The notes under the pieces are model-generated. The model saw nothing but the letters and a program-made list of their open reading frames with translations. It was not told the DNA's origin and searched no databases. A stretch of DNA of 63,181 bases, the filler included, from Reticulomyxa filosa (taxonomy: Eukaryota; Protista; Foraminifera): the NCBI GenBank assembly GCA_000512085.1. It is 18 parts of 18 records of this genome, joined end to end, with 100 filler letters (N's around TTAATTAATTAA, not from the genome) between each part and the next. Parts side by side here need not be neighbours in the genome. Positions count along the whole stretch, not along the records: positions 33,123 to 37,461 come from ASPP01028387.1; positions 37,562 to 39,316 come from ASPP01001107.1; 16 more parts are not named here. One strand, 5' to 3'. Positions 33,123 to 38,794 of the stretch are shown one piece after another. Numbering within the stretch: position 1 is the stretch's first letter; each line of letters opens with the position of its first letter. The position numbers and the translations under genes were made by a program.

Positions 33123-34066
33123 TCTTTGCTTCTGTCTTTTCATCTTCACTGCTTTGCGAATCAGAATGAGGTGGATCTAATACAATTGACGGTTTTTGAG
33201 TGTTTGGTCCACGCGTAGGAACTACTGGTCCGATTGTTCCATTATGTGTACCTTTTTTTTTGAGTTCTTGTTAGATGATTCTATTAATGAATATTTCATG
33301 GATGGAGACAACAGAAAATATCACATACTTTATTATTATTTATTTAATTTTGTTGTATTTATGATTATAATGGAAATCACACAATCAAATAATAAAATAT
33401 ACCTTTGGATTCTTTCTTCTCACTGTTGTCCTCATTACTGGAAAAAGAAGAAGAGGAAGGACATGAGTAGTATCCTTTCTCTTCTTTATCATCCTCGCGC
33501 TGGGTTAGCATAAAATTCTCAAGCGCAGAAGAAAGCGTTTTTTCTCTTTCCCAAACATATTCATTCTTGAATCCCCATTCCGAACGAACTCTTCGTTCTA
33601 TTCGTGATTTGATTGTATCCCAATGTATAAATGCGAAGCATAAATCCAATTGATACGATTGATACAAGCCTTCACATCTCTTAAGTATTTGATCCATTGT
33701 CAGAGACAGTTGTTTATTTTTCAAATTATAAAAACATTGTTCAACAAGTGCTTTCGCTACCACATCCGGTTTGTCAGCTTTAACTACACTTTCATCTTTT
33801 GCAAGACGATTTGCCAAAAGGAAAACATCATTGGCATTTACTTTGCCGTTCCTCTTCTCTTTTGCTTCTATTGTTTTCGTTATATTGTGGCTTATGATGT
33901 TGTCATCCTAAAAAAAAACGTCTAACAAAAAAAAAAGGAGTGAACCAGAAGAACTCAAAATAAATTCGATAAATTGAGTTATTTTTCCATTGTTAACAAT
34001 CTCTAATGAACCTCCACATGCATCAGATAGATCTGTCCAATGCCTGAATTCCTTTTCCACGCTTCC
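33123..34066 (-). CDS. Hypothetical multi-exon coding region directly downstream of the OAS-like ORF (separate gene or continuation)
   Basis: Exon-like pieces SVEKEFRHWTDLSDACGGSLEI... and DDNIISHNITK...NRLAKDESVVKADKPDVVAKALVEQCFYNL...EWGFKNEYVWEREK, with TAG acceptors and T-rich introns. Confidence 0.55.
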
Positions 34067-34352
34067 TATAATATAGATACATACACTCCAGAATTCTTTT
34101 TTTTTGTTAACTCCTCATGGAGTCTTTTTTTTACTCTTCCTCCCCCTTACTCTTCTCATATCAGTAACGTATAGTAGCACTGTCCAAAGCTCTAGCATTG
34201 TCGAGATGATTTTTCAGCGTGTAATTGGAAGTATCAAAACACCCTTGTTTCGTTTTAAATTGATCGTGTGTATCGCCCGTATTGATTTGAAGACACTTGT
34301 CCTTTGTTCCATTCATAGGCAACGAACAGCTCTTCAATTTTTGCATTTGATA

Positions 34353-35210
34353 TCATTCGACAATTTTTTGAAATAATGGAGTATTGGTTTGTTGATATTG
34401 CTCTTTTAATTGATAGGATAAACCAATACAAATGAATTCCAAAGAATTGTTTGAAAGGTGGGATTTACGTTTCATTGCAATGTATTGCCATACTTTTAAA
34501 AACATTATTGCCAACTGTACGTTTTTATCCACTCTTTCTCTTATGTGGTACGCGCAGAGTAAAGACAAAGACGCATACATATTACATTTTAAAAATTTTT
34601 TCCACGGCTTACTTATTTTATCTACTTTTTCGATATGTCTTTGATGTATCGATGCTTCATCAGACAAATCATTGGCAGCAACTTTCAATTCCTCTGAAGA
34701 AAATGAATAAACGTGGACATTATTTTGAGTGTAATGAAATTGACAATACTGTCTTTTCGAAAAAGTCCAAGCTACTACAATATGATATTCCAACCCTTTC
34801 CAATTGATTTTTAATGATGATTTCGAATGTTTCAATATTTTTATTTTATTTGTGCAACGTTCTTTTCTTATTTTGTCGATGATTTGATTAATCCATTTGA
34901 GAATGTCATTGTGTTTTTTTTGGAGTGAATCAATATTATTATAATCCAAGTGTCTTTCTTTTAAATGATGTAAGAATACCAAATATCCACAAGATACATT
35001 AGGAATGGCAAGTTGTTTTTGTACACATCCAGATAATGTCACTCCATAAACACATGAAAATGGCCTTTTTTTATCGTAATATGCCGTTTCTCTGTGTTTG
35101 TCCAGTAGATTATTCACAAGGTCGTTGCCAAGCTCATAATACGATCCAGTGACTGTTAGATCTTTGAGTTTTCCTTCCAAGAAGGTTTGATAAGTCAAAT
35201 TGTCTGTCAT
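34353..35210 (-). CDS. 2'-5'-oligoadenylate synthetase (OAS)-like nucleotidyltransferase-fold protein, predicted catalytically inactive
   Basis: Motifs match OAS in order: [23 protein letters not shown] ~ [42 protein letters not shown] ~ RALSF...[39 protein letters not shown] ~ [40 protein letters not shown] ~ LPPQYALELLTV. Recognised by eye, not by search. Confidence 0.68.
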   Translation of the reverse strand: [285 protein letters not shown]

Positions 35211-35575
35211 ATTAAAAAAGAATACGAAATTTTTAAGAATTTTTTGTTTTGTTAAAAAGTTGATACACGTTTACAGCCAGCGTTTAATAAATTAATTCTA
35301 GTTGAGCACAATGCGAAGGACTTTCTTTTTTTGTGTTACTGTTTTTCTCAAAAAAGAAGTAAAACAAAAAATGATTAATTAAAAATAATCAATCGCGTAT
35401 TGCGGTAACAAGGAAAAATGGCTAATCAAAAGTAATATTGAAAACAAGCGAAACAAACCAAAATGCTGAATAATGACATCTTTCGAAATCATAAAGATTT
35501 GCAAAATCAATTATCAAGTATTCAATCGAAAATTTGGATAGTCTTTCTTAAAGAGCGTGACCATTGTAGCGTTAA

Positions 35576-35922
35576 TTTTATTTCGCTCTTTGTGTGTGGG
35601 AAAAATGAGTAAAACTAAGTGTAGTATGAAAGAACTTTAGTTCCGAAAATAAGTTTCAGTAAGAAGAAGCTAAATTAATACTGTAGAATAAGGCCATATT
35701 ATGCCTTTTAAGTGCTAAGGGAATGAGAGAGCCCCCAGCGGGTTAAAATCTTCTTCACAACACAACTCACTTTTGTCTTGTTTCTTTTACTCTTTTCTTT
35801 ATTTTGTTGCAATTATTGTTGTCCAATTTATTTCCTCTTTGCTGAAATCGATTTTTGGAACTAAGTCCCTTTCGTATTACACTTAGTCTAGCTCACTATC
35901 CCTACAAAACAAAGAAAATAAA
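35576..35922. repeat. Long imperfect inverted repeat A/A' (core arms 35595-35676 and 35825-35906)
   Basis: Manual alignment of A with the reverse complement of A' is ungapped over 82 nt with 59 identities, e.g. ACTAAGTGTAGTATGAAAG / CTTTCGTATTACACTTAGT. Confidence 0.93.
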
Positions 35923-35966
35923 GAGAAAGCAGTTATGTTTGTGAAGGAGATTTGGCCCACTGGGGG
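35732..35966. repeat. Second imperfect inverted repeat B/B' (arms 35732-~35790 and ~35911-35966), interleaved with A/A'
   Basis: CCCCCAGCGGGTTAAAATCTTCTTCACAACACAACT pairs with AGTTATGTTTGTGAAGGAGATTTGGCCCACTGGGGG. Confidence 0.92.
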
Positions 35967-38794
35967 ATCGCAAGATTGCTTTGTAGAAAAAGTTAATTTT
36001 TTTTTACAAAAAAAAATCAAAGTTTTTCATTGTCTTAACTTTAAAACTTTTAATTAAGTATTTGTCGAGCGATTACAGTGAGCTATTTTTATTAAAGCAG
36101 AAAAGATACTGTAGTGAGACTACTTACGTCACAATGGAGTCAGTATGACTCCAAATATACAAAGTTGTTTTCGTTTTTAATTTAAGTTCCAAAAACGCCT
36201 TCTTGCTTTCTTAAAACGTGCTTTTCCGCTCCAGGTCCCTACAATACTAAAGAAATTTTTAAAAACAGCAAACTTTTTTTCACTTGCGCCAAGGATTGTG
36301 ATTGATGATCACCGACACAAGTCGGTGACTCGTCAAAGTCACATAGTATTCTTTCTGCAATTAAATAGTTTCCAAACACAATTTGAGATATTTTTGAAAA
36401 CGAAAAAATTTTTTACTCAGTCTGTGTTCTTACTTGAACTTTGTGTGCCCTGGTTTTAGTTAGTTGGTAACTCTCGCTTCCTACTTGCAGTGTTTTTGCC
36501 TGAAATTGATGCTAATGTTTGTCCAGTTTCTGACTATCACTGTCCAATAAAAATTTCTTGTATTTTGCACACCTTTTTCTGTGTTGCTCACTTGACGTGC
36601 AAATACTTTTAATCATAACTTCCTTCTTGTTGCTGCAACAATCTTGTAAGCTCTTTCACGATTTTGATTCATTTTTCAGATGGCCTTCTTTTATCACATA
36701 TGATAATTTTCTCATATCCCATTTTTAAAAATTTCTTTCTGAAATTATATCAATTGCATTTATATGCCCACTATATAGGTAGTGACAAAAGTCTTGACAC
36801 CAAAATTGTGCTTTATGAATATTGTTGATTTTCTAAGTCAAAAATAAAAAAAAATTCAAACTTCATTATCAATATAAAATTTACACGGAAAGTTGTTTAT
36901 TGAAGGGATATGTAATAATGCTAACTAGATACTTCAACATCTATTAGTTTTGAAGTTTATTTTAAGTTTTTTAGTTTGAAATTGTTGAAAGAATTTTCAT
37001 TGGAAGAAAACCAAAGTTTGTGGACCCATTGGAAAAATGAAACAAAGTCCACAATTTATGATCAAAATGAAGACATCATCGAATGACAAAATGCGAAAAC
37101 AAGCAAATGACAAAAATTCAACTAATTTGACCAATTTATAGAATGTTTCGTTATCAAGTCAATTGCTGGCACAATGTAAGGACAAGTCTAAACAATATAA
37201 GATGACAGTACTACCAGAACTGGAAAAGAAAAATATTTAGAAGTAGATTCAGTAGATTCAGAAATACTTGATCGACAAGGAAAAAATTCTATGGTAGAAA
37301 ATATCAACGATATTCACGATATCATGAAAATCAAGATAAGATAACAATGCAGCACAAACGACATAATCATTATTGCAATGAAGAAGCAGAAAGTGAAAAA
37401 AAAGCAAGAAAATATAGATACAGTATGTTGCAAGAAAACTGAACGCCTAAAACGATATCTTNNNNNNNNNNNNNNNNNNNNNNNNNNNNNNNNNNNNNNN
37501 NNNNNTTAATTAATTAANNNNNNNNNNNNNNNNNNNNNNNNNNNNNNNNNNNNNNNNNNNNCAATATTCAATTATATTTTATTTTTTTGATTTGTGTATT
37601 TTTTTTCATCTTTTTGAATTTGACTGTTTTTAAAATTATATTTAATTGATTAATTTTAATAATTTTATTCAAGTCTGGCATTATTATCTTCACAAATTAT
37701 TCATTCACACATGTTGCTGTTGGCTTTTTCCACAATTATGATCTACTAAATTATACTAAATTTAACAGTACATGCTGACAACAACATTTTGTGCAGTAAA
37801 GTATATAAACAATTATATTATCATTCACCAGGCCAATCTTTGTTATCCCTTATTGTCTTTGAAAAATGTTATTCAAATATATAATTTAAAAAAACAAAAT
37901 ACAAAACATATATGTCTACACATATAATTTACGACGCTTTCGTAACTTAATACCACACATGAAAAAGTAAGTATGCTATTTGCATGCACAACTTAATAAC
38001 TATATGTGCTTTGTGCGTGGAGACAGAGTGTGTCCATTTGGCAAACTGTTAAAGATAGACCGGAGAAGTCGTAAAAAAAAAGAGTGGGGGAGACGCACGT
38101 TCATCACGCTCAAACATGTGATATATTGCAAAGTAGTCAAACTATTGGCATAAAATGTCATATGTGTTATGGTGAATTGATGTTACATGACCAATTCTCT
38201 TTGTTTGGTAACACTTCCATAATTACATACAAAAGTTAAATGTATTTTGAATAGTAAGAGTGCTTTCCATTCGATTCCGGAACAGTGATTGAACATTCAT
38301 TGAACGAAGTGATCACTTATTGCTTAATTTATCAAACATACAATCTTTTTTTTTACACGATGATTGTAAAGAGAATGTTGATGCGTGCTGCAGAACAAGT
38401 AGACAGTCCATTTTCCCATTCACTATGGTATTGTGGTTGATGCTACCGCAATGGCGAATGTTCAGCTTTCTTGTCACTTTGTTTTTGTTTTGATTAGACT
38501 CAATTTGTAGTTCTATTTCTTTATTACATTTTTCATGATCACAGCATTCTTCTCTTTTTCACAAAGTAAAAAATTTAATTATATTTTTATTGATAATATA
38601 CATGTATTATACATATATTTCTTGATTCCAGACTATTTTGTTAATATACTTCAAAACAGATGTTATTTTGATATTACGGTAATTAAGACGAGATAAGATA
38701 GTTGTATCGGGCGGAAAACTATCAGTGATCTTCTTCACGTAAAGAAAAAAAGGAGTTGACCCAAGAAAAAAATCAACAAAACTTTGTCATAAAA

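Follow-up and report, generated by a model that had tools for sequence, protein, structure and literature searches.

Positions 33123-37461 of the window (the whole 63,181-nt stretch of Reticulomyxa filosa DNA analysed here) form a single AT-rich contig of 4,339 bp. Reticulomyxa filosa is a freshwater foraminifer. On the minus strand the contig encodes an uninterrupted open reading frame (ORF) of 285 codons (34353-35210, ATG at 35210) with the fold of 2'-5' oligoadenylate synthetases (OAS), and a long hairpin-forming region lies upstream of its start codon. We consider it probable that the ORF represents a conserved pseudo-OAS paralog and that the hairpin beside it was made by inverted duplication of an upstream element of the same gene family, here called element E. 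An earlier note on this DNA had instead proposed that protein and hairpin belong together as a protein-RNA system. The features are collected in Table 1. L- and P-numbers are labels for the contigs and proteins compared; L009 is contig ASPP01032913.1 and L002 is contig ASPP01004733.1.

The OAS fold and the range of the family

Pfam searches with the ORF and 22 relatives gave no match, including to PF10421 (OAS1_C) and PF01909, phmmer of the ORF against the PDB gave none, and a profile of the close paralogs only found nothing relevant. A profile with divergent members (alignment A3) had one relevant match in the PDB, human OAS2 (9h1z, E-value 0.017), which covers the GS...DxD strand-loop and the LxKxW and (L)ELL helices of the C-lobe. 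No significant sequence match to curated OAS models was found.

The fold is evident from structural comparison. In the ESM Atlas the ORF scored 0.95 to OAS1_C families (190 of 256 features shared) and the divergent member P0022 scored 0.96, with a template-modelling (TM) score of 0.60-0.67 to OAS1 clusters; the features also point to DZF clusters. AlphaFold2 (AF2) with 13 close paralogs gave an unusable model (predicted local distance difference test, pLDDT, 46), which was improved by adding divergent members from the HMMER search: the 31-sequence alignment (A4) yielded a pLDDT of 92.2 and a predicted TM score (pTM) of 0.89. Foldseek with this model returned porcine OAS1 first (4rwn, E-value 1.5e-5), followed by OAS2, NF90/NF45, human OAS1 and OASL. 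VIA-align also ranked OAS1 best (Z 15.4, 235 residues aligned, root-mean-square deviation 4.2), ahead of ILF2/ILF3 (Z 13.6), OAS3 domain I (13.3), and CD-NTases and poly(A) polymerases (~12-13). The AF2 model, Foldseek and VIA-align therefore all identify a two-lobed Pol-beta fold with an OAS-type helical C-lobe.

The ORF has 16 relatives at E-values <= 1e-55, all annotated as hypothetical proteins of R. filosa (RFI_*). When the family profile was run exhaustively with HMMER against 1.84 billion representatives, 26 proteins were recovered at E-values < 1e-3. Of ten family members whose sources were looked up, nine are from R. filosa and one, P0035, comes from an ENA metagenome; a JGI metagenome scan for protein relatives found none. 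Together, these results indicate a lineage-restricted expansion. Thus, we conclude that this is a multigene family nearly confined to R. filosa, within the OAS branch of the CD-NTase/Pol-beta nucleotidyltransferases. P0035 (675 aa, on an 18,962-nt metagenome contig) has the motifs GGS, NGD and FD and a long C-terminal extension, and may derive from another foraminifer. Culbertson & Levin (2023; PMC10732462) included five R. filosa sequences in their alignments and trees of eukaryotic CD-NTases, and one of these is the family member P0022 (EP00480_P025644).

The family is partly arranged in local clusters, as the 9.7-kb contig L002 holds three OAS-like paralogs: P0020 (27-1493, -), P0006 (2517-3583, +) and P0016 (6323-7543, -). 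P0020 and P0006 are head-to-head, with one copy of element E between them in common. A reverse-transcriptase (RVT_1) gene is present at L001 1-694 (+), ~5 kb upstream of paralog P0002.

A replaced active site and a truncated window copy

In alignments A3 and A4, three family members (P0022, P0025 and P0027) keep LGGS, [D/E]-x-D and (F/Y)D, and the family e-g-d aligns with the catalytic D-A-D of OAS2. The subfamily to which the window ORF belongs, with at least 16 sequences, has LSGC / SCGY / (E)YH at these places in 16 of 16, and two outliers carry H or N variants. In the window ORF, C74, Y76 and H143 stand where OAS has its Asp triad, and C62 takes the place of the GS serine. Neither the G[GS] motif nor the three metal-binding carboxylates expected of an active member are present (SGC / SCGY / YH). 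The ratio of nonsynonymous to synonymous divergence (dN/dS) is 0.12-0.40 over 21 pairs within the subfamily, and 0.30 between the window and L009. As the replaced residues are themselves invariant, the pattern is that of a conserved pseudoenzyme and not of a decaying one: the fold is kept, all three catalytic carboxylates are gone, and the subfamily is under purifying selection.

Judged from the residues alone, the replacements predict that these proteins do not synthesize 2'-5' oligoadenylates. OAS-fold proteins, inactive ones included, bind double-stranded RNA (dsRNA). By analogy with OASL, the inactive domains of OAS2 and OAS3, and DZF proteins, the subfamily would act by binding RNA, a ligand or an active paralog rather than by synthesis.

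The window copy of the gene is itself interrupted. The TGA that ends the ORF (34353-34355) falls inside a 44-bp segment that is inverted relative to the paralogs. Three comparisons identify this inversion. The family motif FDIIRQFFEIM is encoded on the opposite strand (34328-34381, +; tblastn), blastn to L001 and L002 gives a short plus/plus match inside an otherwise minus-oriented alignment, and in a breakpoint scan re-inversion of 34335-34378 makes the sequence gap-free and collinear with L001 and raises the score from 161 to 210. Owing to the inversion, the ORF is short of the last ~65 residues of the C-lobe. Homology resumes past the premature stop, in the same frame and then in another (Table 1). 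The more distal stretch (33380-34069) comprises the end of the OAS domain and a ~100-aa C-terminal domain without a Pfam match, and is probably joined to the ORF by one or more introns in the intact gene. Full-length relatives are 327-553 aa. The window copy is probably a recent pseudogene or truncated allele, cut at codon 286.

The C-terminal ~100-aa domain (motif ..EHCF...W..I..) lies at window 33377-33817 (-) and follows the OAS-like core in full-length relatives. It also occurs in P0018 (residues ~430-520), P0024, P0025, P0035 and P0036.

Much of what the earlier note had said of the protein is borne out by these results. It had recognized an OAS-fold ORF, which the confident AF2 model, the top rank of OAS1 in both structural searches and the OAS2 profile match support, and had called the protein catalytically dead, in agreement with the replacement of the GS serine and the three carboxylates. 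Its description of an intronless ORF starting at 35210 holds for the 285 codons, which are uninterrupted, but not for the gene, which is incomplete there and has homology continuing to 33380.

Element E and the upstream hairpin

A repeat search and blastn identified two hairpin arms (35577-35676 and 35825-35922) that are 72% complementary over 101 nt and enclose a 148-nt spacer. The hairpin base is 366 nt away from the ATG. The 431-nt region 35560-35990 folds at -123 kcal/mol (z = -5.6), a 776-nt region gives z = -9.1 on the plus strand and -5.7 on the minus strand, and no shuffled sequence folded as well as the native hairpin region. A second helix of ~66 nt is formed by 35729-35807 and 35904-35969 (83% identity over 66 aligned positions). 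It crosses the main helix, so both cannot form fully. The non-coding, dsRNA-capable region that the earlier note had placed ~360 nt from the ATG is thus confirmed; of its ~80-bp and ~40-bp helices, both are present (as ~100-nt arms and the ~66-nt helix), but they are mutually crossing. Rfam searches with the window piece and three paralog loci found nothing at E-values <= 1. We rejected the possibility that the hairpin is an assembly artefact, as it recurs with 6-11% divergence on the independent contig L009.

The hairpin is composed of copies of element E. Window 35672-35894 is homologous (65-67% over ~220 nt) to the regions upstream of P0012 on L006 and P0020 on L002. The L006 copy (1947-2142) lies 317-512 nt upstream of P0012 and the L002 copy (2035-1831) 338-542 nt upstream of P0020 (327-538 nt as matched in the pairwise comparison), both in the same orientation relative to the gene. 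An explicit alignment shows that 35577-35676 (+) corresponds to the first ~98 nt of E and 35904-35969 (+) to E positions ~116-194, and that a near-complete sense copy (35922 to 35682) sits between these two antisense pieces, e1 and e3. As the antisense pieces flank the sense copy, the hairpin amounts to a second, inverted copy of E that is divided by the first, and the pairing of e3 with sense E explains the shorter helix of the earlier note. Such an arrangement could have originated by nested insertion or by a template-switch type of inverted duplication.

An nhmmer profile of E recovered the four copies (window, L009, L002 and L006) at E-values of 1e-46 to 1e-57, as well as additional antisense pieces in the window and L009 and a fifth copy at L002 9096-9301 (E-value 4.5e-8), which is followed 304 nt later by an ATG at the end of the contig. 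The four-way alignment includes the invariant 20-nt block ACTAAnTGTAATACGAnAGG and several shorter invariant blocks, and a degenerate inverted copy of the ACTAAnTGTAATACGAnAGG block is present at 35614-35633 (+). E is conserved between paralogs whose synonymous divergence (dS) exceeds 1, while the flanks of E are unalignable. Its retention despite saturated synonymous sites and unalignable flanks argues for constraint on the primary sequence. RNAalifold on the four copies gave -6 kcal/mol and no common structure. We rejected a coding exon as an explanation of E, as its copies share no ORF and differ by indels whose lengths are not multiples of three. In metagenomes the 20-mer ACTAAnTGTAATACGAnAGG had seven matches, all confined to the 20-24 nt block, as expected by chance. 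Every copy of E in the ~80 kb of contigs sampled is located upstream of a start codon in the neighbourhood of OAS-like genes. The likeliest role for E is that of a promoter or 5'-leader module.

Alternatively, E could be a short non-autonomous mobile element, similar to a miniature inverted-repeat transposable element (MITE) or a short interspersed nuclear element (SINE). The hairpin would then be a nested insertion, and the proximity to OAS-like genes incidental or an insertion preference. An antisense copy divided exactly around a sense copy that is nearly complete is how a nested insertion classically looks, there are at least five copies in the ~80 kb sampled, and a paralog contig (L001) does carry a reverse-transcriptase gene. 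However, at three independent loci E has the same orientation and lies ~320-540 nt from an OAS-like start codon, which is unexpected for independent insertions. By eye, we saw no clear target-site duplication at 35576/35577 or 35922/35969 and no clean terminal repeats; no tRNA-like part was found, nor was any copy elsewhere in the sampled sequence. We regard a mobile origin of E as unlikely.

The comparison of paralogs covered 12 further contigs with ~14 paralogs. The hairpin is present at one of these ~14 other loci, L009 only, where the arms are 80% complementary (z = -9.1). L009 is collinear with window 34537-37422 at 87-89% identity, apart from a 143-nt indel. L004, L005 and L010, whose proteins are 77-83% identical, lack the hairpin, as do L008 and L011, each of which has >1 kb of upstream sequence. 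Two other paralogs (P0012 and P0020) have one copy of E without a hairpin and the remaining loci have neither; at least 11 loci are without the hairpin. The co-occurrence of paralogs and hairpin, which the earlier note had proposed as a test, is therefore limited to the near-identical L009. Adjacency by chance, which that note had allowed for, does not describe the locus either, as the hairpin consists of copies of an upstream element found in front of other paralogs too.

The stems evolve neutrally. When the structure predicted from one hairpin copy is scored on the other (window versus L009), pairing is preserved by 7/13, 8/19, 6/15 and 8/16 of the stem substitutions, and double compensatory changes number 0-1. 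With transitions alone, pairing would be kept in no more than 50% of cases, and the observed ~45% is thus what neutrality predicts. A count of pairs in the alifold consensus, with 0 broken pairs, was discarded as circular because the consensus excludes broken columns. Identity to L009 is 89% in the left arm, 94% in the right arm, 91.5% in the loop and 94% in the spacer; the arms are thus no better conserved than the flanks, and neither compensatory change nor elevated stem conservation was found in this low-powered comparison of two sequences. Divergence between the window and L009 is a uniform 7-8% across 34700-36102 and higher on both sides, which looks like a shared duplication or conversion tract and not like constraint specific to the hairpin. 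Where the shared coding region ends on its 3' side (34537-34700), divergence from L009 jumps from ~7-8% to 17-32%, which suggests a gene-conversion or recombination boundary.

These data also bear on whether the hairpin works as RNA. The inverted pair could be a hairpin-RNA locus, producing small RNAs that act in trans on E-bearing paralogs, or a structured 5' leader that controls translation. The helices are long and near-perfect in parts, their sequence is shared with the upstream regions of other members, and divergence is lower upstream of the gene (7%) than at third codon positions (16.5%). However, the low divergence also spans the 5' half of the coding region evenly, suggesting a conversion tract, mismatches accumulate neutrally, and if E is a promoter just one arm would be transcribed. 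We consider a hairpin-RNA or leader function very unlikely.

Under the proposal of the earlier note, a bidirectional promoter may yield protein and hairpin RNA together, as a ribonucleoprotein, a decoy/ligand pair or a mobile cassette, or the hairpin could be a structured leader of the gene. Its dsRNA would then serve the inactive OAS-like protein as ligand, decoy or regulatory partner, the two making up one functional unit. The hairpin is indeed real and thermodynamically exceptional, sits between divergent genes, 366 nt from the ATG, and is kept in a second contig, and dsRNA complexes (4ig8, 4s3n) are among the top structural matches of the ORF. Against this, other paralogs lack the hairpin and only a near-identical duplicate has one, the stems are neutral without compensatory pairs, with arms not conserved above their flanks, there is no Rfam family, and this copy of the gene is truncated. 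A dedicated protein-RNA unit appears highly improbable on this evidence, and the protein would have no RNA partner of its own at this locus.

A more elaborate possibility is that Cys62, Cys74 and His143 (perhaps with Tyr76) form a new metal or ligand site on a non-enzymatic sensor, while small RNAs from the hairpin tune E-bearing paralogs in trans. If true, a foraminifer would possess an expanded gene family of innate-immune-like character that regulates itself; we mention this as a long shot, the least probable of the readings considered here.

We thus return to a pseudo-OAS paralog beside an inverted duplication of the family's own upstream element. In this scenario E (~240 nt) would normally be a single sense copy ~320-540 nt upstream of some family members. 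The common ancestor of the window contig and L009 would have gained a second, inverted copy, now split around the first, which would have created a ~100-bp palindrome and the ~66-nt helix, both since decayed neutrally. Several points weigh against this interpretation. H143 was placed by motif alignment (of the family and of published CD-NTase alignments) and not by structural superposition. The 44-bp inversion might have been introduced by misassembly, and the gene would then be intact. The hairpin may be transcribed as RNA. It survives in two copies with long helices intact, which selection would also predict, and with two sequences only the covariation test has little power. Lastly, E could be dispersed through the genome as a repeat, and its association with OAS-like genes could then be an effect of contig sampling.

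Beyond the hairpin, an intron-containing neighbour gene was identified at ~36823-37461 (+), with a homologue at L009 137-942 (-, 192 aa). As it is divergent from the OAS-like gene, the hairpin lies within a head-to-head intergenic region of ~1.6 kb. The first 43-330 nt of the intergenic spacer are common to the closest paralogs, L004, L005 and L010. The stretch at 36103-36245 holds a small perfect stem (GGAGTCA...TGACTCC). Duplication extends beyond the OAS-like ORF: window 33123-33221 matches L005 46-144 (89% identity) and window 33123-35141 matches L001 6509-8530 (71% identity over 2.1 kb). Genes downstream of the ORF were thus duplicated along with it, and the duplication unit is larger than the gene. 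Scans for tRNAs and tandem repeats found nothing relevant.

Table 1. Features of the OAS-like locus, in window coordinates.
Feature	Position	Strand	Remarks
Homology to P0018 (553 aa) residues 328-547, downstream of the ORF	33380..34069	-	other frame, one in-frame stop
C-lobe continuation in the same frame, past the premature stop	34161..34352	-	homologous to P0002 residues ~360-415
44-bp segment inverted relative to paralogs	34335..34378		tblastn, blastn, breakpoint scan
OAS-like ORF, N-lobe and most of the helical C-lobe	34356..35210	-	catalytic positions are C62, C74, Y76, H143
Spacer from ATG to hairpin	35211..35576		94% identity to L009
Left hairpin arm, antisense partial copy (e1) of E	35577..35676	+	75% identity to sense 35922-35825
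Sense copy of E, same strand as the gene	35682..35922	-	5' part (35825-35922) is the right arm, the rest is loop
20-nt block ACTAAnTGTAATACGAnAGG	35868..35887	-	invariant in window, L009, L002 and L006
Second antisense partial copy (e3) of E	35904..35969	+	83% identity to sense 35807-35729
Stretch of ~143 nt without counterpart in otherwise collinear L009	36103..36245		indel
Small 20-bp hairpin	36296..36341		inner stem broken in L009; edge of the region in the earlier note

Relation to known systems and significance

Of the CD-NTases in eukaryotes, OAS-like proteins are considered the most widespread; to our knowledge, almost nothing is known about them outside animals. The R. filosa family shares with OAS1 (4rwn, 4ig8) the order of the lobes and the LxKxW and (L)ELL motifs of the C-lobe, and its active-looking members keep GGS/DxD/FD. 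It differs in having only ~11-14% identity, no Pfam OAS1_C or NTP_transf_2 match and, in the window ORF, replaced catalytic residues. Also among the top structural matches are inactive OAS-fold proteins, including OASL (4xq7), OAS3 domain I (4s3n), OAS2 domain I (9h1z) and NF45/NF90-ILF2/ILF3 (4at7, 9gtz), with VIA Z-scores of 12.1-13.6, which also keep the OAS/nucleotidyltransferase fold and have lost the active site. Unlike these, the subfamily of the window ORF lacks ubiquitin-like domains (OASL), tandem OAS units (OAS2/OAS3) and a DZF Pfam signature. It has instead an invariant Cys/Cys/Tyr/His set and, in full-length relatives, a different C-terminal domain.

Among eukaryotic OAS-like CD-NTases, P0022, from the data set of PMC10732462, matches the family profile at an E-value of 3e-54. 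There is no mappable SGC/SCGY/YH accession among the five R. filosa sequences of that data set, and the degenerate SGC/SCGY/YH expansion appears not to be described in that work. The hairpin resembles MITE-like foldbacks and hairpin-RNA loci in its two opposed unit copies, its ~100-bp helix with spacer and its antisense copy split around the sense copy. It differs from such loci in that no clear target-site duplication was visible by eye and in the fixed position and orientation of E upstream of paralogous genes.

The most useful results are the pseudo-OAS subfamily with its Cys/Cys/Tyr/His centre, the truncating 44-bp inversion and the upstream element E. The locus also carries a caution, in that long gene-side hairpins in repeat-rich protist genomes can arise by inverted duplication of a gene's own flank. 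E would provide a first route into the regulation of OAS-like genes in an organism with uncharacterised promoters. The few active-looking members beside an inactive subfamily of at least 16 sequences offer a natural comparison for the role of inactive OAS folds in a protist.

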